64,000 nucleotides of DNA from Phaeosaccion multiseriatum (Eukaryota; Protista; Ochrophyta, other classes), in NCBI GenBank assembly GCA_965112735.1, contig OZ218958.1:372001-436000 (forward strand), read 5' to 3'. Position numbers and translations under genes: made by a program. Below, in pieces: positions 38,854 to 59,759 of this stretch. Each line of letters begins with the position of its first letter. The first letter of the stretch is position 1. The notes below the pieces were generated by a model that saw nothing but the letters and a program-made list of their open reading frames with translations, had not been told where the DNA came from and did not search any database.

Positions 38854-39187
38854 TATTGCTCCAAGATTCTCTATACGTTCTCCCTTCTCGCTGCTCTCTC
38901 CACCGCCGCGACTACTCTTGGCAAAGAGTCAGGCAGCCATGCTGCCGGCCAGCTGCTTCGAAGTACAAAGCAAGAGAGAGAGAGAAAGTGGTTTCCGAGT
39001 GGACCCTTTTGTAAACACGTACCACCAAAGCCTTCGTTCCTCTATACAAGCGACCCAGTCTGTGTGCAGTTCCGAGTTCCTTCGCTGTGCAGAAAACGAG
39101 AGGTGATTGGCGGGAGGCCGGAGAGCTCAGGAGGGGAGACGGAGAGGAACTTCAAGGAGGGGGGGAGAGAAAGTAAAGGGGAAAGAG

Positions 39188-41034
39188 ATGGAGGGGGGAA
39201 AGAGACGAGCAGCAGCGCAAAACATTCCCTCTTCTAGTGCTTCCATGAGGCACTCAGGGGGGGGCGCTACTGAGGTAGCAGACTGGGATGGAGTGAAGGT
39301 GCTGACCCTCATTGTTGCAAACGTGGGTTCCGTCAAGAGTCTGTGGGGCTTGTGCAGAGAGGTGGATGCAGTCGTGGGGAGGCGACTCCGTCTAAACTGC
39401 CGTATGCCTAAAGCGGTTCAGCAGAGAATACTGAAGATGCTCGAGCACCAGCAGCGGCTTGAGCTTGAGCCATCTGGGGGAGGAGGAGCATCCTCTGCTG
39501 CTGGGGATGGACAAAGACCACGCGTCCAGGAGGCGCGGCGGCGGGCCCAGCAGTGTGGAGAGGGAGGAGGGGAGGTTCCCAGCAAAAGGCATTTTCGGGT
39601 CAGCGCTGTCACACTGGGTGGCAACAAGTATTCCTATCGTCCTTGTGGTGATGATTTACGGGCGGACATTGCCCTTGTCCTTGAAGGGCTGAGAGTGCTC
39701 CCTCCCTCGGTGAAGCACGTTCGCTTGGGAGATGGTTTCAGCTGTCGTGACCTGCGTCTTCCTGACGGGCTGGAGAGTGTACATTTTGGACAAGAGTTTT
39801 CCGGAGATGTCAAGCTTCCGCACACCTTGAGGGAGTTGAGCTTTGATCCTCAGCAGCCCGTATACAATCGTCCTTTGGACCTCCCCCCATCGCTGCGAAA
39901 GATCACGCTTGGGCGCTGCTTTAGCCATGACGTGACTCTTCCCAGCTCTCTGGAAGAGCTAAAGTTCGGCTGGCGGTCTTCCTTCAATCATCCGTTAACC
40001 CTGCCTGCCTCTCTTCGGACTCTGCACCTGGGAGAGAAATACAGTCTGCCCCTATCGGATCTGCCGGACGGGCTGACGGAGCTGAAATTTTCCGAGTTGT
40101 CGAGCTTTAATCATCCGTTGATCCTGCCTGCTTCTCTTCGGACTCTGCACCTGGGACTGTACTACGGGCTTTCCCTATCGGATCTGCCGGACGGGCTGAA
40201 GGAGCTGACCTTTCCCACTGACTCGTGGTTTAATCATCCGTTGATCCTTCCTCCCTCTCTTCGGACTCTGCAGCTGGGGAGGGATTTCGCGCAGCCTTTG
40301 TCGCGACTCCGGGATGGACTTGTGGAGCTCAAGTTCAGCTATTCGTCTTCCTTCAACCATCCGTTAACCCTGCCTGCCTCTCTTCGGACTCTGCACCTGG
40401 GAGAGAACTACACGCTGCCCCTATCGGATCTGCCGGACGGGCTGACGGAGCTGAAATTTCGCGCTTTGTCAAGCTTTAATCATCCGCTGGTGATCCTTCC
40501 TTCCTCTCTTCGGACTCTGGAGCTGGGGAGGGATTTCACGCAGCCGTTGTCGCGACTCCGGGATGGACTTGTGGAGCTCAAGTTCGGCTATGTGTCTTCC
40601 TTCAATCATCCGTTAACCCTGCCTCCCTCTCTTCGGACTCTGCACCTGGGACGGCACTACACGCTGCCCCTATCGGATCTGCCGGACGGGCTCAAGGAGC
40701 TGGTATTTTCCGTTTACTCGAGGTTCAATCATGCGTTATCCCTGCCTGCCTCTCTTCGGACTCTGCACCTGGGAGTGTACTACACACTGCCCCTATCGGA
40801 TCTGCCGGACGGGCTGACGGAGCTGAAATTTCGCGCCTTCTCCAAGTTTAATCATCCGTTGATCCTACCTGCCTCTCTTCGGACTCTGCAGCTGGGGTGG
40901 ATGTACACGCAGCCGCTAGCACATCTACCTGCTGGTCTGGAGCAACTCGTGGTTGGCAACGATGACCAGCTCCCCGCTCAGCTGCCAAGAGGCCTTGAGG
41001 TGGAGTACTACACGGAGGAGAGTGAGATTGATAT

Positions 41035-41076
<42 letters not shown>

Positions 41077-41128
41077 GGAGGAGGGGGAGGAGGAGGAGGA
41101 GGAGGAGGAGGAGGAGGAGTGTTCTTAA
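39188..41128 (+). CDS. Second intronless F-box-like/FNIP-type LRR protein with poly-D/E tail
   Basis: Open frame with eight ~41-aa double repeats FNHPLxLPASLRTLHLGxxYxLPLSDLPDGLxELKFxxxS. Caps are homologous to the 9790 gene. Start could also be ATG 39245. Confidence 0.88.
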
Positions 41129-45532: not shown

Positions 45533-45801
45533 GATTCGAGCGAATTATTGGAAATGTGTATCACCGGCCCCTTCACGATCTCATGGACGCCCGCACGCTT
45601 CGAATTATTGGAAATGTGTATCACGGCCTCTAGCAGCGGCACCCGGTGACTCAACACGACCGCACCACTCCTATATACTCCTATACGATGAGGTGCCCGG
45701 CGGTCCGGCTGCTGATAAGCAGTATCTTCTCTCTCATTGAGGTGACTGGAGCGTCGGTTTGTTCTTTTTAATGTGCTTGCCTTGGTGCCGAATCTCACTT
45801 T

Positions 45802-48800
45802 ATGCCCTCACACACCGGCTGAGCTTGCTTGCTGCCTGCTGTAGCTTAGTCCTGCTTGCGACTGCTGGCTGCCCGCCTACGTGAGCGAAGGAACAGCAGG
45901 CTGGCTGGCAGCGTGAGGCATTCCTTTTTAATGGAGAGATAAATGGCAGGCCCAATCTTACTCCCACGCCCTTCCGCACACTTGCCTGCCTGCTGCTCCG
46001 GGACCTCTTCAGCTCGCGTCCGCCGTTGGTGTACAACGGCTTCTCCCTGGAGCAGCAGTGGACTGTGAGGCCCTGTGCTTGGACATCAACCCCAACGAGC
46101 CGTGCTTTGAGGATGATTCTTGCGCTGGTGGCGGTGAGTTGCAGGGTTTATTGAAGACGATGAACTACTCAGTCGATGTGTATACACGCCTTTTTCGATG
46201 TTGCCTGCGCCTGCTGCGATGTATACCTGCGCCTGCCAACCTCCTTGATGTTCCTGCCTCGTGATAATATCGCCCGCCACGGCCGCCTCTTCTCCTTCTC
46301 CTCTTCCTACCCACCAAACGCCTCAGGCCTCGGGTGCAACGCCGCTGGTGTGGACCAGGAGTGCCGCTTCTGCGGTTTCGGCGATTTTGATCCGTGCCCA
46401 GGAGGCGGCTCGACTGTTCCTCCCACGCCTACTCCAGTGGCCGCCGCGCCCACTCAGGTTATTGGCGTGGCTGACTGGTGTCCTCCTCACTCAGTCCGTT
46501 TGTGCTTCCCGTCTCCCTTGCCTTACTTCCTCTCCTCTCTCCTCTCCTCACTCCTCTTGGGTCTCTGAAGGATGCTTAACCCCTCTCCCACTCCCCTGTG
46601 CTCTCCCTATGGCCCCGCCCCGACCCTTGCACCAACGACTGCCGCCCCTACAAAGGTGCCCACCCATGCACGGACCAGCGCTCCAGTCGCCAACGACGAC
46701 AGCTGCCATGAGCGTTGCGTGGCGATCCATGCCGCTAGCACTTGCGTGCTGGACCCGTCGTGCCTCGACTGTGCCAGCGACCATCAAGGGTGTAAGTAGG
46801 ACGCTTGCACCGTGTCCTCCTGTCCTTGTCTCCTCAGCTCCGGCGGAGGAAGAAGCTGCTCACCTGATCCTCCCCCCCCCCCTCCCTCCTGCCAGCCCTT
46901 TACAACACTTCCACCCTCCTCTCTCCTGCTGCTCTCGAATCGCGCCATAGGCCTCGGATGTAACGCTGCTGGTCTGGGCCAGGAGTGCCGCTTCTGCGGT
47001 TTCCAACCTTTCGATCTCTGCCCAGCGGACGACACAACAGTCCCGCCGACGCCTACTCCAGTAACCGTGACCGCCACGACAAGCGCTCCAGTCGCCCCCG
47101 ACGACAGCTGCTATGAGCGTTGCGTGGCGATCCATGCCCCTAGCACTTGCGTGCTGGACCCGTCGTGCCTCGACTGTGCCAGCGACCCTCGCTCTTGTAC
47201 GTAGCTGCATGCATGTAGACTTGTCAACCCTCTCTCTTCTGCCTTGCTCCTATGATATCCTCTCCTCGCTTCATCACCTCAGGCCGAATCTCCTTTCTCC
47301 CTCCTACTCTCCTGCTAACCGTTTACCACACTCCCCCGCTGCTGTTGAATCGCGCCATAGGCATTGGATGCAACGCTGCCGGTCTGGGCCAGGAGTGCCG
47401 CTTCTGCGGTTTCCACCCCTTTGATCCCTGTCCAGCGGACGACACGGCTCCCACAGCTGCCCCGACTGCAGCACCGACAGCTACCCGGACTGCAGCACCG
47501 ACCGCTTCTCCGACTGAAGCACCGACAGCTGCCCCGACTGAAGCACCGACAGCTGCCCGGACTGCAGCACCGACCGCTTCTCCGACTGCCGCACCGACAG
47601 CTGCCTCGACAGCTGCCCCGACTGCGGCACCGAGCGCATCCCCGACTGAAGCACCGACAGCTTCCCCGACTGCTTCCCCGACTGCAGCACCGACCGCCTC
47701 TCCGACAGCTTCCCCGACTGCGGCACCGAGCCCTTCCCCCACTGCAGCACCGAGCGCTTCCCCGATTGCAGCACCGACCGCTTCTCCGACTGCAGCACCG
47801 ACCGCTTCTCCAACTACAGCACCGACCGCTGTCCCGACTGCAGCACCGGCCGCTTCTCCGACTGCAACACCGACAGCTGCCCCGACTGCTGCACCGACCG
47901 CTTCTCCGACTGCAGCACCGACAGCTGTCACGACTGCAGCACCTCACAAGCGTGCCGGCGACGCTTGCGTCGGGGGCAGCGACTTCGGCAGCTTCCGGGC
48001 AGGCTCGTGTGACTCTCAATTATTGTGCATAAACGACGCTTGCACACCCCCGGGCGAAGTCGGCGACACTTGTGAGTTACGGGGGAACATGTTCGGCTTT
48101 GGCCCGGGCACGTGTGACCGCAGTCTGTACTGCGAAAACGACTCTTGCGTGCCGGGTGGCGCTCTCGGCGACGCTTGTAAGGGCAACCCCGTCTTAGGCA
48201 GCACCTGCAACTTCGGCGTCTGCGTTAACGGGGTTTGCAGCCTCCGGGGCCGTATCGGCGACGCTTGTGTTCCTTTCTCCTTCCGAAGCCCCATCGGCCC
48301 GGGCTCATGTGTGCATAAATTATTCTGCATGAACGAGGTGTGCACCCCGCCGGGGGAAATCGGCGACGCTTGTGATCCTGACAGCGGGAGATTCAGCGAG
48401 GGCACGTGTGACTCCAGTCTGTTGTGCGTAAACGGCTCTTGCATCCCCCCGGGCGAAATCGGCGACGCTTGTGAGGTGGATAGCAACACCATCAGCGCGG
48501 GCACGTGTGACTCTCAATTATGGTGCGTGAACGACTCTTGCAACCCACCGGGCGATATCGGCGACGCCTGTGCCTCTGGCATCTTCGGCATCTTCGACAG
48601 CACCTGCAGCTCCGACAACATCTCTACATTATTCTGCGTGAACGGGGTGTGCACCCCCCCGGGCGAAATCGGCGACGCCTGTGCCTCTGGTGTCAAGGAC
48701 AATTATGGTAAGGACAATTTAAGTAGCAGTACCTGCAGCTCCGACAACATCTCTACATTATTCTGCGTGAACGGGGTGTGCACCCCCCCGGGCGAAATCG

Positions 48801-49066
48801 GCGACGCCTGTGCCTCTGGTAGTGAAATCTTCAGCACCAGTACCTCTGATTACACCTTTTCTTATAGCTCTTACAGCGGCCCCTTCATCAGCAGCACCTG
48901 CAGCTCCGACAATTTCTCTACAGTATTATGTGTGAACGGGGTGTGCACCCCCCCGGGCGAAATCGGCGATGCTTGCGAGGTTTATAGCACTAGTTCCTCT
49001 TCTTCGTTTAGCAATACCTGCGAGGAAGGGCTCTCGTGTATGTCCGGCCAGTGCGTGGAACCGTGA
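45802..49066 (+). CDS. Secreted Cys-rich protein: signal peptide, three LGCNAAG..ECRFCGF modules, Pro/Thr/Ala stalk, ten 4-Cys (PGEIGDAC) repeats
   Basis: Exons ~45802-45880, 46013-46133, 46327-46457, ~46612-46791, 46951-47196, 47361-49066. Signal-like HRLSLLAACCSLVLLATAG. The 5' part needs two single-base corrections, and one acceptor lacks AG. Confidence 0.7.
47445..47945 (+). repeat. Coding 12-bp minisatellite (TAAP/TASP/TEAP)n, mucin-like stalk
   Basis: Seen directly in the ORF 47252-49066. Confidence 0.9.
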
Positions 49067-49386
49067 CCCAAACGGCGAGTAATGCGTAAACGAGTCATTG
49101 GATTCGCTGTCTCCGCCCTTTCCCTCCATGCCGTTCCTCCACCCTCTGTCCCCCGTATGTCGCTCCTCCCCTCTCATTTCGCTTCCGAACATGATGTGTC
49201 GTGTCTCGTTTGCTAAAGAGAAATTGCTAAAAGTTTGAAATCGTTGGTAGAAATACATGTACAAAAAAAGGCGAATATCGTGCTAATAGGTAAATTAAAA
49301 TTCCCCTACCACAACTGGCGACTACCTAGTGGATGAACAACATACAAAGAGCTTTGCCCCCCTTTATTTACACTTTTTTGGCTTCC

Positions 49387-52300
49387 CTAAGGCCCAGAAG
49401 TTACGAGTGAACTGCAAAAATCACATCCACAAGGCCCACCATACATCTTGCTGGCGGACTGGCTCTCTGGAATGAGCTCGCCGTTGCGATTGCGCTTCCT
49501 GGGCCGCTTCTCGGCATCGGGCACGGCGCAAGTCTTGGTCGGCCCTGTGTGCACGCGCACGCCACCCCTCTGAGCCTCCTGATAATGCCCGCACGTCTTG
49601 CACATCTTTAAGGCCCTCTTCCGCTGTGGTTCATCGGGAAGTGTGGCCGGTTGACCACTGGCACCGCTATCAGGCACGCTTCCTCCCTCCGAAGAGAGGG
49701 AAGAGACTTGCTCCCGCAGGGTGCACGCCTCGGCGCTACTCGCAGCCGCAGCCGCAGCAGTTGCTGCTACCAAAGGCACACGCCCCTCTCTCAGCCGCCT
49801 CTGCTGCTCGAGCTGTCCTGGCGATGGGCACGTCAGCTGTGGCTCTAAGAGGGAGTTGTTGAACTCCTCCCCAGGCGCAGGCCGCCTCAAGTCCCTTGTC
49901 AGCATGGCCCCCTGCTGAAGAATCGGCTTCATAGTGGCCTTCGCGCTCATCCTCCTCTTCAGCCGTTCATAGTGCTGGCGCAGTTGCGCACTCGTCTTGC
50001 GGAAAACATTGCACCACTTGACCTCTCCTTTCTCTACCTTCGTGCAGCCCTTGTTCCAGTCGCCAGCAAAGCGGTCAAAGTCGATCGCACCATTTGCTAA
50101 CAGCTCTCCCCTCTCTGATCGTTGCCCGGCTGCGGCACCTCTGTACATCGAGGACTCCTTCAGGAACTTGGCCTTCTCCTCCTTGGTGGCCACCTTCCTC
50201 GCTGGAATCACGAGACCCGCGCTGTCTGCTAGAAACTGCGCAGAAGGCGAGAGGCTCTTGAGTGCAGTCAGCGACTCCTCAACGTTTGCGCTACGCTCTG
50301 CTGCCTCTGAGGCAGCAATGTCATCCTCGACGTACACAACATCACTGCAGCTGTCCTCTCCCGCCCCTTCCTCCCCTTTGAGCTGCACACTTCCCCTCAG
50401 ACCAAACCGCTCTCCCGTATCTGCAAAATCAAGTATGCAGGGTGATCCAGCGAACAGCGGCTCCTCCACAAACCAGCTCCGCGTCATGAGCTGAAGCTCC
50501 TCGACGCGGTGCGCATCGTAGAACTTGCCCAATCCCAAATCCAGGAGCAGAAATTGCTCCTCCTTGTCCTGATTCCACCTCCTGTTGAACTCCAGGGTTA
50601 GCGCATTCACCATGGGCGTGGACATGCTAGCATTGCCGATGAGCTTGCGGAGAAACAAATGGTAGTTCTCCGTGGCGTTCGTCCCCCTGACGCATGTGTA
50701 CGACGGCCTTCCGTTCGCCGCCTCCCCGTTCGCAATGTAGAGAGGTACACCCTCGGGGTCACTCAGACAACCCAGAGCGATGTGTTTGCGCAGCGCCTTG
50801 ACCTGAGGCAGCGAGGCACAGGCGGGATTGGGGAGTGGGGCAGAGGGAGGGGGGAAGGGCGCCTCGGGTCAGTGGGGCGAGGAAGGGGAGAAGGGGATCA
50901 TCAAAGCATTGCGAAGCGAAGCAAACGCAAGGGGGGGCGAAGGAGACGAATACAAAGCAGTGTAACTCGGAGAGGGAGATGGCAGCTACCTGCTTCAGGG
51001 CCTTCGGACGGAAGAGGGGCTCCTTCAGGTTGGCGTCCATCACGTCTGCGTACACGGCAATGAGGCGGTCAATTCTCTTGAGGAGCTCCTCGGGCTGTGG
51101 AATCCTTCGACGACAGAAGCGCAGGAAGTACCCCCAATCGTCATGCTTCTTCTGCCATATCTCAGCTTCGGTGAAACCCTCCTTCTTGAGTTGGGCCTCC
51201 ACAGCCCTTATGTCGTCCTCATTCGCCATGAAGACGCAGTCTCGGAAGTGCGCCATGAAGGGCTTGAAGGCCCCATGGCTCTTCTTCAGTACCTTTGAGA
51301 TTCGCTGGAGCGCGTGAAAGGCGTCTAGGCGGACCGTAAGGAGACGAGCACGGCCCTTGCGCTTTTCCTGAGTGTCAGAGTCGGCTTCCGCAGAGGTCTT
51401 CTCCTCTCCACAGTCATTCCCCGTCTCCACTTCCCCCCCAACCCGCGCGTCTACTTCCTTTTCCTCCTCATCCTCATCCTCCTCATCCTCTTGCTGCTGC
51501 TGCTGCTGCTCCTCATCCTCCTCATCCTCCTCCTCATCATCCTCCTCCTCCTCCTTCTCCTCCTGGTCTTCTCTTCCTCCCTTTCCCCCGTCTTTCCGAG
51601 CAACCGCCGTCCCGACATATTGCGGCACACATGTGCGCGCGGCCTCGTCGGAAGGAGCATCGAAGAAGCCCTCCTCCGACGGGGTCGTATAGCGCTCGCT
51701 CTTCTCGTCCTCCGCAAGATGTCGCTTCGAAGCTGCGTCCCGAACCGCCTTTTGTGCCACCTCCTCGGCGGAAGGAGCCACTCGAAGATGACCACAGTCC
51801 CACAGCACCCGCTGCCCTAATGTGCTAGCAAGACATCGGAGCGTCTTGGGGGAGTCCTCGTCGCCGTAAAGGGTGTGAGCCCCTCCGACAAGTACTTCGC
51901 ACACCTTCACCACTCCCCTACTACCGGATGTCTTCCTCTGAAGTCTGAGTCTGCCCCATGCCTCGCCATTGTGGGCAACGGCGACCCGTACACCAACACA
52001 CTGCGAATGTGTAGAGTCATACATGAGCAGCTTGGTACCTTCCGGTAAGGGATAGCCCGGCGCTGTGAACACAGAGAGAAAGGGAGAGGGCACAGGAAGG
52101 TGAGCGGTATTGGTGAGAAACGTTGGAGCGGTCAAGCAGGAAGCAAAGGGAGGGACGGAGTGAGTTAGATAGGGAGGGAGGGAGAGGGGAAGAGGAATAC
52201 CTACATGGATTGTAGATCGGGTCCGCGTGCTTCACCATCCGCTCGTGGATGGCAGCAGCGGCATAGGCGTCGATGGCAGCGTAGTTCAGCTGTAACTTGG

Positions 52301-58268: not shown

Positions 58269-59759
58269 ATGGCGCAGCGGACAACGTTAACGCCCGAGGT
58301 ACGACCTAGCGCCCACCTGTGAGACAGGTTTTCTTTGGAAAGCGTAGAGCAAGGCGAGGGGTCCTTCTGTGGATACGATAGCTGCGGTGGGAAGCTCACG
58401 TGTCGACGGAACAGGCAGCTCTCCGTTGATCCCTTTTCATCCGGTGTATGCGCCTCTCCCCCCGCTTTTGAGAAAACAAATGGACTCTTGTGTTTCGAAG
58501 AGAGCAGAGCGAGGGAGGGTTTTGTGGTGGATAAGATGGCTGCGGTGGAATGCTCACGTATCGAAGCAGTGAGCAGCTTCCTGTTGATCCCTTACAGCCT
58601 ATGTATATGCGTCTCTCCCCCCCATTCTCGTTTCCCTCAACAACACCAGGCGCGGCAGCTGGGGCAGGCCCTGGACAGATGGGAGAGCTTCCCCAATGTG
58701 GAAGCGCTGATTGGAAAGCTCATCGCCAAACATGGGAAAGCGAGTTTGGATCAGCCTATCTACGAAGAAGGATATACCGCAATGCGTGTGGCTGCAACAC
58801 AAGGTCGGCTGGATGTCATTGACCTTCTGCTGCGGGAAGGGGCCTCCTTCAGCACCAGAGGGGGGCCCGTTAGAAGCACGCCATTGATATCCGCTAGCGG
58901 CATCGGACACGATCAGGTGGTGAGGCGGCTGTTGGACATTGGAGCCCCTGTCGACCAAGCGAATGACCCAGGAGTTACTCCCTTGATGGTAGCATCAGAA
59001 ATGGGGCAATCCATGACAGTGCAGCAGCTGCTCTCGGCGCGCGCTAGTGTCGACTTGGCGGACGAACACGGTCGGTCTGCGATTTGGATGGCCTCTCAGA
59101 ACGGACATAGCTCTGTTGTAAGGCGCCTCATCTCAGCCCAAGCGGATGTGAACCACGCAAATAATGTCGGGAGAACTCCGCTTCTGAAGGCATCGGCCAA
59201 AGGGCATGCGGGCATCGTACAGCAGCTCATCAGCGCCCACGCCAGCATCGACAAGGCTGACGTCCACGGTGTCACTCCTCTTCACCTTGCCTGTCAGGCA
59301 GGGCACGACGCCGTGGTGGAGAAGCTTCTCTCTGCGGGAGCACGTGTGGACAAAAGGACCAACGCTGGCGCTTCAGCCCTCCACACTGCAGCGCACAATG
59401 GGCACGAGGCCGTCGTCGCTCGTCTCATCTCTGCGGGATCCCCCATCGATATCCCGGCATCAGAGACTCCTCTCCTTGCTGCCATCAACAGAGACCACCA
59501 CGGCACTGCGCGGCAGCTCCTCTCGGCCGGTGCTTCGGTGGACAAGGCCTTGGCTGGGGCACGGCGGTGGCAGCTCGGCCAGGACATCGAGCAGCGACTT
59601 CTGGAGGCGGCAGCAGCCTTCTTCCGGTCCCAAACCGCGCTGGACCTCATGCGAAGGACGGATCCGACCTTCGGCAAGGAGAGCGGAATCCTGCCGCTGG
59701 AGAGGCCCTGGAGTGTGGGGAGCGAGACGTGGGAGGGCATGGCGGAGGAGATGGGCTGA
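58269..59759 (+). CDS. Ankyrin-repeat protein with conserved C-terminal DPTFGKE domain (exons 58269-58298, 58650-59759)
   Basis: MAQRTTLTPE|gtacga...caccag|ARQLG joins in frame; about 8 ANK repeats; open to TGA. Confidence 0.85.

Follow-up and report, generated by a model that had tools for sequence, protein, structure and literature searches.

A putative secreted Cys-repeat glycoprotein with ten disulfide units of differing loop length in Phaeosaccion multiseriatum

Within a 64,000-nucleotide stretch of contig OZ218958.1 of Phaeosaccion multiseriatum (the window; about 58% GC and eukaryotic), genes with FNIP and ankyrin repeats lie near a gene on the forward strand whose predicted product carries ten tandem units of four Cys residues each. 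The units (47957-49063) sit in a 604-codon open reading frame (ORF; 47252-49066) and follow the scheme G-D-A/T-C, loop, C-x5-C-x4-C; a Pfam DUF7107 match together with neighbours in the ESM Atlas and the AlphaFold database (AFDB) points to the Dickkopf_N/EB/DUF7107 type of repeat. We suggest that this gene probably encodes a secreted modular glycoprotein with a structural or adhesive role, in which the loops between the first and second Cys (C1-C2) drift by slippage and the frameworks between them are homogenised.

Ten Cys units in a repeated framework

Translation of 47252-49066 gives C1-C2 loops of 13, 13, 9, 13, 11, 11, 11, 17, 29 and 14 residues for units 1 to 10, a C2-C3 spacing of five residues except for four in unit 3 and nine in units 7-9, and a C3-C4 spacing of four residues in all ten units. 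The ten GD(A/T)C units and their loop lengths had been listed in an earlier note on this sequence, which read the array as an antibody-like extracellular binder or variable surface antigen with loop-focused diversification, and the translation bears out that anatomy. Three framework copies on the forward strand stand out in the last part of the array: (i) copy 1 at 48598-48691, the reference copy of repeat family D1, (ii) copy 2 at 48727-48820, 99% identical to copy 1 over 94 nt, and (iii) copy 3 at 48892-48985, 85% identical to copy 1. Copies 1 and 2 appear to have been homogenised. Over the interval between C2 of one unit and C1 of the following one, the framework of unit 7 equals that of unit 8 (100% identity), that of unit 9 reaches 90% against both, units 1, 5 and 6 are mutually 83-84% identical, and the remaining pairs reach 53-77%; the identity that the earlier note had claimed for the frameworks at 48602-48691 and 48731-48820 is thus confirmed. 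Because independent contigs bridge loops 7, 8, 9 and 10, the layout of the repeats does not stem from faulty assembly: contigs of the same sample extend over units 1-7 as well as over loop 9 and loop 10, and loop 8 and loops 9/10 are bridged by contigs from two further samples.

The loops of units 7-9, all on the forward strand, carry short duplications, which were evaluated against nucleotide and codon shuffles. Loop 7 (48572-48604; ASGIFGIFDST) has an exact 9-nt tandem duplication, GGCATCTTC occurring twice at 48578 and 48587 (P<=0.004 versus codon shuffle). In loop 8 (48683-48733; ASGVKDNYGKDNLSSST) a 15-nt unit is imperfectly duplicated in tandem, and a core of 10 nt, AAGGACAATT, recurs exactly at 48695 and 48710 (P<=0.001 versus codon shuffle); the two 15-nt copies differ at about four positions. 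Loop 9 (48812-48898; 29 residues) begins like loop 7, its opening being ASGSEIFST compared with ASGIFDST for loop 7 minus the 9-nt duplication, and continues with a 54-nt low-complexity insertion rich in S/T/Y between AGCACC direct repeats; its duplication is imperfect and not significant by shuffle. Of the three loop micro-duplications proposed earlier, those in loops 7 and 8 therefore stand and that in loop 9 does not.

The composition of the loops and their mutual similarity likewise sustain the earlier description only in part. The AT-richness ascribed to the loops is found in loops 8, 9 and 10 (GC 0.43, 0.49 and 0.40), whereas loops 1-7 have a GC of 0.61-0.74, at or above that of their own frameworks; pooled values are 0.567 for loops and 0.591 for frameworks. 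The loops had also been described as rich in S/F/G/Y/D; over all loops (n=141 residues) S (35), G (21), F (13) and T (13) dominate, D accounts for 8 residues and Y is rare (5/141). Loops 7 and 8, at 45% identity, are about as similar as unrelated sequences, in line with the claim that adjacent loops are unrelated, but loops 5/6 share xxDSxxxSxGT and loops 7/9 share ASG..IF..ST; loops 1/2 share FG…G[ST]. In units 5/6 loop identity is 64% versus 84% for the framework. The loops of the older units are thus still homologous and diverge faster than their frameworks, and in the young units 7-9 tandem micro-duplications account for most of the length differences. An origin of AT-rich loops as foreign insertions was considered and rejected, since a low GC is confined to loops 8-10, whose sequence is of low complexity (S/T/Y/N/K), and loop 8 carries a significant internal micro-duplication.

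Family assignment and predicted fold

The repeat region (47945-49063) matches Pfam DUF7107 (PF23416) with 30.5 bits compared with a gathering score of 24.6 (E 4.7e-7). Among three-unit segments of the protein and its relatives, 11/21 match DUF7107 at E<=0.01, and EB matches six of them. An exhaustive HMMER search of 1.84 billion representatives returned only six proteins (P0001-P0006) at E<=1e-3, the best at 8.9e-9 with 38% identity. In each of the six, G-x-x-C-(4 to 24)-C-x5-C-x4-C recurs in tandem, with a variable first loop and fixed spacings elsewhere, so that the Cys spacing C-x(n)-C-x5-C-x4-C is alike in the ten units and in these relatives, and they give weak DUF7107/EB matches themselves. 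The P0001 contig is bacterial, with an adjoining gene of the TetR family, and the N-termini of P0002, P0003 and P0005 read as lipoprotein-like. Protein-language-model neighbours, which we take as a lead only, are Myxococcota clusters annotated Dickkopf_N/DUF7107/EB with scores of about 0.8.

The structural models point provisionally in the same direction. In the AlphaFold2 (AF2) model of units 4-6 (mean predicted local distance difference test, pLDDT, 71; predicted template modelling score, pTM, 0.58) a beta-hairpin is formed at every C3-C4, the hairpins having a pLDDT of 80-85 and the loop blocks 56-65. The AF2 model of units 7-9 is poor (pLDDT 52, long loops <50), and loop blocks span 39-65 across the AF2 models. 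Shape matches of the units 4-6 model in the ESM Atlas are Dickkopf_N/DUF7107/EB clusters with template modelling (TM) scores of 0.50-0.61 by query; in AFDB, clusters annotated Dickkopf_N match the model at E 1.3e-4 to 3e-3 with TM <0.56, include the dictyostelid protein DDB_G0272530 and are mostly without a listed organism, and clusters annotated as EB-domain match in the same E range. Word-indexed protein search gave no match to the repeat region, and searches for related loci in JGI metagenome contigs, by single protein and then by alignment A3, and in viral contigs yielded pattern matches only and confirmed no relative. A literature search on DUF7107 and DDB_G0272530 found no papers. Based on the sequence and model comparisons, we provisionally assign the units to the small disulfide repeats of the Dickkopf_N/EB/DUF7107 type, of which they appear to be borderline-but-consistent members; the protein is a lineage-specific addition to a known kind of repeat.

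The best matches of the ten units in sequence, features and shape are the Dickkopf_N/DUF7107/EB proteins of Myxococcota and Bdellovibrionota, including P0001-P0006. They share the tandem G-x-x-C-(variable)-C-x5-C-x4-C and a first loop that varies from 4 to 24 residues and is sometimes Y/D/S-rich, as in P0005 with a Y/D/N-rich loop of 24 residues. Nevertheless, their identity is 31-38% with E no better than 8.9e-9, and they are lipoprotein-like or signal-peptide proteins without the mucin-like stalk or the N-terminal 10-Cys modules described below. Dictyostelid Dickkopf_N-like proteins (DDB_G0272530, F4PM27, F0Z6L0) and animal EB-module proteins, which are likewise eukaryotic, extracellular tandem Cys arrays, resemble the three modelled units in predicted fold (AFDB clusters E 1.3e-4 to 1.2e-3, probability ~1.0) but differ in that TM by query is 0.38-0.48 and HMMER gives no sequence match. 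The first cysteine-rich domain (CRD1) of animal Dickkopf is also a small disulfide-rich beta-hairpin module, and Pfam Dickkopf_N co-annotates the nearest clusters; however, the matches to the Dkk4 N-terminal domain and Dkk1 in the Protein Data Bank (PDB) are not significant (E 1.7-2.3, TM by query 0.40), and CRD1 holds 10 Cys in one domain compared with the tandem 4-Cys units here. No Wnt context is implied. In architecture the protein falls into the class of the SCREPs, tandem disulfide-rich secreted proteins with about 60,000 candidates across life (PMC6262176, 2018). This class is descriptive and not a homologous family, and its characterised members are short venom peptides, in contrast to the mucin-like protein of about 780 residues described here (PMC6262176).

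Gene model and extracellular architecture

The first ~36 codons of the 604-codon ORF are read as intron read-through, and the exon would start at 47361 behind an AG acceptor. Sequence reading and scripted splicing give five exons, separated by GT-AG introns of 193, 198, 159 and 164 nt, that join into a single frame open over 779 codons; it encodes 68 Cys, which is an even number, seven N-x-S/T sequons and a C-terminus without a hydrophobic stretch. All exons lie on the forward strand. Exon 2 (46013-46133), recognised from sequence and frame continuity, would carry a divergent 4-Cys half-module, VDCEALCLDINPNEPCFEDDSCAGG, and end in phase 1 at donor GTGAGT. Exon 3 (46327-46457) carries a half-module GLGCNAAG..ECRFCGF..CP, paralogous by tblastn to those starting at 46951 and 47361, and a short PT linker; exon 4 (46656-46791) carries a linker and a half-module DDSCHERC...CLDCASD that is 90% identical to 47083-47196, and ends at donor GTAAGT in phase 1. 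In exon 5 (46951-47196; donor GTACGT, phase 1) a GCNAAG/CRFCGF half-module and a DDSCYERC half-module are joined by a PT linker. The last exon (47361-49066) holds a further GCNAAG/CRFCGF half-module, the PT stalk, the ten Cys repeats and the TGA stop (49064-49066). A candidate first exon at 45688-45741 on the same strand (MRCPAVRLLISSIFSLIE, donor GTGACT, possible signal peptide) was found among combinations of ATG, GT and AG in frame with exon 2. A competing start is the ATG at 45771, and either candidate hydrophobic leader can be spliced to exon 2 without breaking the frame; the placement of the first exon (45688-45741 or from 45771) and the candidate leader are therefore uncertain.

Read across the introns, the N-terminal part (46013-47440) comprises three copies of a 10-Cys module, DDSC.ERC…C…C..C……C.GCNAAG…CRFCGF…..CP, with short PT linkers between them, and a phase-1 intron interrupts all three copies at the same codon. 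The 10-Cys modules have no Pfam match, the GCNAAG/CRFCGF module has none in word-indexed protein search, and Atlas neighbours of the modules are compositional look-alikes only, such as a viral mucin-like glycoprotein G (scores <=0.69). The module appears to be lineage-specific and matchless in every library searched. A contig of run X1 maps piecewise over 46108-47351 with non-GT/AG joints at 46141>46319, 46348>47079 and 47112>47351, mismatches nearby and a depth of 121 compared with ~96 for the locus; it probably represents a paralogue at another locus of this genome, in which the same N-terminal modules are arranged differently. Just 5' of the candidate first exon, the intergenic DNA contains an exact 24-nt direct repeat, cgaattattggaaatgtgtatcac, at 45541-45564 and 45601-45624 (60 nt spacing), a pair that could be a paired regulatory site. 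A search of the whole window with Rfam gave no match.

Between the N-terminal modules and the ten units lies a mucin-like P/T/A/S stalk of ~165 residues (47453-47943, forward strand), encoded by a tandem array with a 24-nt period (Tandem Repeats Finder, TRF, ~14-20 copies) and matched by Pfam PT in 8 stretches (E=1.1e-20). The P/T/A stalk that the earlier note had placed before the repeats is borne out by both searches. The stalk is of the O-glycosylation type, and the sequons located in the frameworks read NIS, NFS, NDS and NGS. The even number of Cys, the stalk and the seven sequons also support the extracellular location proposed earlier; from composition and architecture the product is likely to be secreted, and stalk and sequons suggest that it would be glycosylated.

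Origin of the loop differences and role of the protein

Near-identical contigs from other samples show which parts of the array vary. In the plant metagenome X5, a duplicated GTA after 49037 places an additional Ser in the C3-C4 stretch of unit 10, and an insertion of three bases (ACT/TAC) after 48984 lengthens the TS-TS pattern in loop 10 by one residue; two substitutions are also seen in X5, N>D at 49013 in loop 10 and, behind C2 of unit 4, V>E at 48312. In the metatranscriptome contig X9, 3 nt are lost at 48694 and N>K occurs at 48718, both in loop 8. In total, 3/3 indels are in frame, which argues that the coding sequence is functional, and 3/3 coding single-nucleotide polymorphisms (SNPs) change the amino acid. 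The variants fall in loops and at non-loop sites (n=3 SNPs, 3 indels), and this sample is compatible with fast protein evolution and far too small for a conclusion on positive selection.

Combining these data, we suggest that loop differences and framework identity arise as follows. The multi-exon gene, with five exons and a candidate first exon, would encode a secreted, heavily glycosylated product of roughly 780 residues in which three 10-Cys modules, a PT stalk and ten disulfide-bonded units follow each other and which lacks a C-terminal anchor. Each unit would form a short beta-hairpin knot (C2-x5-C3-x4-C4) behind a weakly constrained C1-C2 loop, and this loop would accept in-frame insertions and deletions, so that slippage and relaxed selection lead to differing length and sequence. 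We regard the length tolerance of the first loop as a property of the scaffold, because the C1-C2 loop of the bacterial relatives spans 4-24 residues at fixed x5 and x4 spacings. Units 7-9 would stem from a recent local expansion, and the identity of their frameworks would have been preserved or created by recent duplication or by short-tract gene conversion, whose tracts would be confined to the alignable framework, being unable to cross non-alignable loops. The 0-1 differences in the 94-nt framework beside the unalignable loops 7 and 8 are beyond simple divergence. Given that the 15-nt duplication in loop 8 has already acquired about four differences, loops 7 and 8 are older than the framework identity, and therefore we favor recent short-tract conversion, or duplication then conversion, limited to the framework, as the source of this identity.

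Because several Cys modules are combined with a long O-glycosylation-type stalk and sequons and a membrane anchor is absent, the product fits a protein of the matrix, cell coat or wall, or a multivalent adhesin. Its role is most likely structural or adhesive, as a cross-linked glycoprotein of the extracellular matrix, the cell coat or the wall; it may engage in multivalent binding but is probably not a programmed variable receptor.

Several observations weigh against this interpretation. The DUF7107 match is borderline: the raw 604-residue ORF scores 24.1 bits compared with 24.6, and no single stretch passes alone. Foldseek against the PDB gives no significant structure (best E 0.79); the closest matches, at E 0.8-1.7, are to the C-terminal domain of Draxin and the N-terminal region of Dkk4. 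The exon model, the signal peptide and the first exon come from sequence reading only, and support from an RNA library consists of a single 156-nt metatranscriptome contig (X9) of a close variant. Finally, zero framework differences beside the unalignable loops 7/8 also fit selection for loop novelty, and both X9 differences lie in loop 8 and all three SNPs are nonsynonymous, which, at small n, is the direction expected under diversifying selection.

The last of these points bear on the reading closest to that of the earlier note, namely that the fixed Cys scaffold presents the C1-C2 loops as binding determinants under diversifying selection, in a binder or variable surface antigen whose homogenised frameworks would serve to let new loops shuffle between units or paralogues. 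Binders based on a Cys scaffold with variable loops are a recurrent type, e.g. knottins. The contrast between frameworks 7/8 at 100% and loops 7/8 at 45% identity would suit such a protein, as would the absence of X9 differences in ~120 nt of framework. Avidity, as discussed for SCREPs, adds to its appeal (PMC6262176). We consider this reading unlikely, however. Searches of the 64-kb window with blastn-short and tblastn found no loop copies or repeat paralogues beyond the gene, only chance matches of 12-13 nt, and hence no donor cassette and no external or internal source for the loops of the kind that had been envisaged. The loops are of low complexity (S/G/T/F) with low pLDDT, their changes are of the slippage type, the older loops can be aligned, and X5 varies outside the loops as well, in unit 4 (V>E) and between C3 and C4 of unit 10. 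The variable first loop, earlier taken as a sign of diversification, is general to the repeat family, with a range of 4-24 residues in unrelated bacteria, and the SNP sample is too small to speak for selection. What survives of the antibody-like binder is a rigid Cys scaffold with one length-tolerant loop; the analogy to antibodies and the loop-focused diversification are not supported. Overall, we give selection of the loops as binding determinants a low to very low probability.

Comparison with programmed variable systems leads to the same assessment. Variable lymphocyte receptors (VLRs), the variable proteins of diversity-generating retroelements (DGRs), the variant-specific surface proteins (VSPs) of Giardia and antigenic variation by cassettes all combine a constant framework with variable segments, and the Giardia cysteine-rich proteins (CRPs) and VSPs are comparable in being Cys-rich and extracellular (PMC2188815). 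They differ from the present case in that in the window no donor cassettes, template repeat or multigene repertoire were seen, nor was there a sign of switching.

Alternatively, each unit may be an independent bioactive knot, e.g. a protease inhibitor, within a multi-headed inhibitor or toxin-like protein, possibly released at the PPGEIG linkers. A weak match to Pfam amfpi-1 (fungal protease inhibitor; E 0.073, and E 0.0045 on segments) agrees with this idea, as does a weak similarity in fold to inhibitors and toxins of the knottin type, and many secreted bioactive peptides have a tandem Cys-repeat architecture (PMC6262176). Yet every amfpi-1 or knottin match lies below significance or the curated cut-off, dibasic or other obvious processing sites are absent between units, and the long mucin stalk and the extra Cys modules better suit a matrix or surface protein; we hold this alternative to be somewhat less likely even than diversified loops. 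Rather improbable, too, is that the ten-unit array constitutes a germline-encoded recognition or adhesion repertoire in which conversion restricted to the framework is combined with slippage-prone loops positively selected for novelty; if it did, the protein would be an innate multivalent binder of a protist with fast-evolving specificity for the surfaces of prey, symbionts, kin or a host. That the gene is decaying or unexpressed and the loop indels neutral is very improbable: no transcript of the exact locus was seen and the X1-X4 contigs run unbroken across the inferred introns, thus behaving as genomic DNA, but the 1.7-kb exon is open with 40/40 Cys of the ten units in register, five exons give one open frame, 3/3 indels are multiples of 3 and a close variant (X9) is present in an RNA library.

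With drifting loops in homogenised frameworks as the preferred reading, a eukaryotic, mucin-stalked member joins the little-studied superfamily of Dickkopf_N/EB/DUF7107 repeats, on whose function no papers were found, and a single exon displays two processes together, i.e. concerted evolution of structured segments and slippage turnover of an unconstrained loop. A new diversification mechanism is not indicated.

The surroundings of the gene add three minor observations. Just downstream, at 49273-49400, X1 word depth rises to ~1100-2000 with several variant contigs, and this segment is probably a dispersed high-copy repeat. Upstream, a long ORF at 39107-41128 on the forward strand encodes nine FNIP repeats (Pfam E 2.9e-62) and ends in a poly-Asp/Glu tail. 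Further downstream, at 58335-59759 on the forward strand, another ORF encodes eight ankyrin repeats (Pfam Ank E 3.6e-46).

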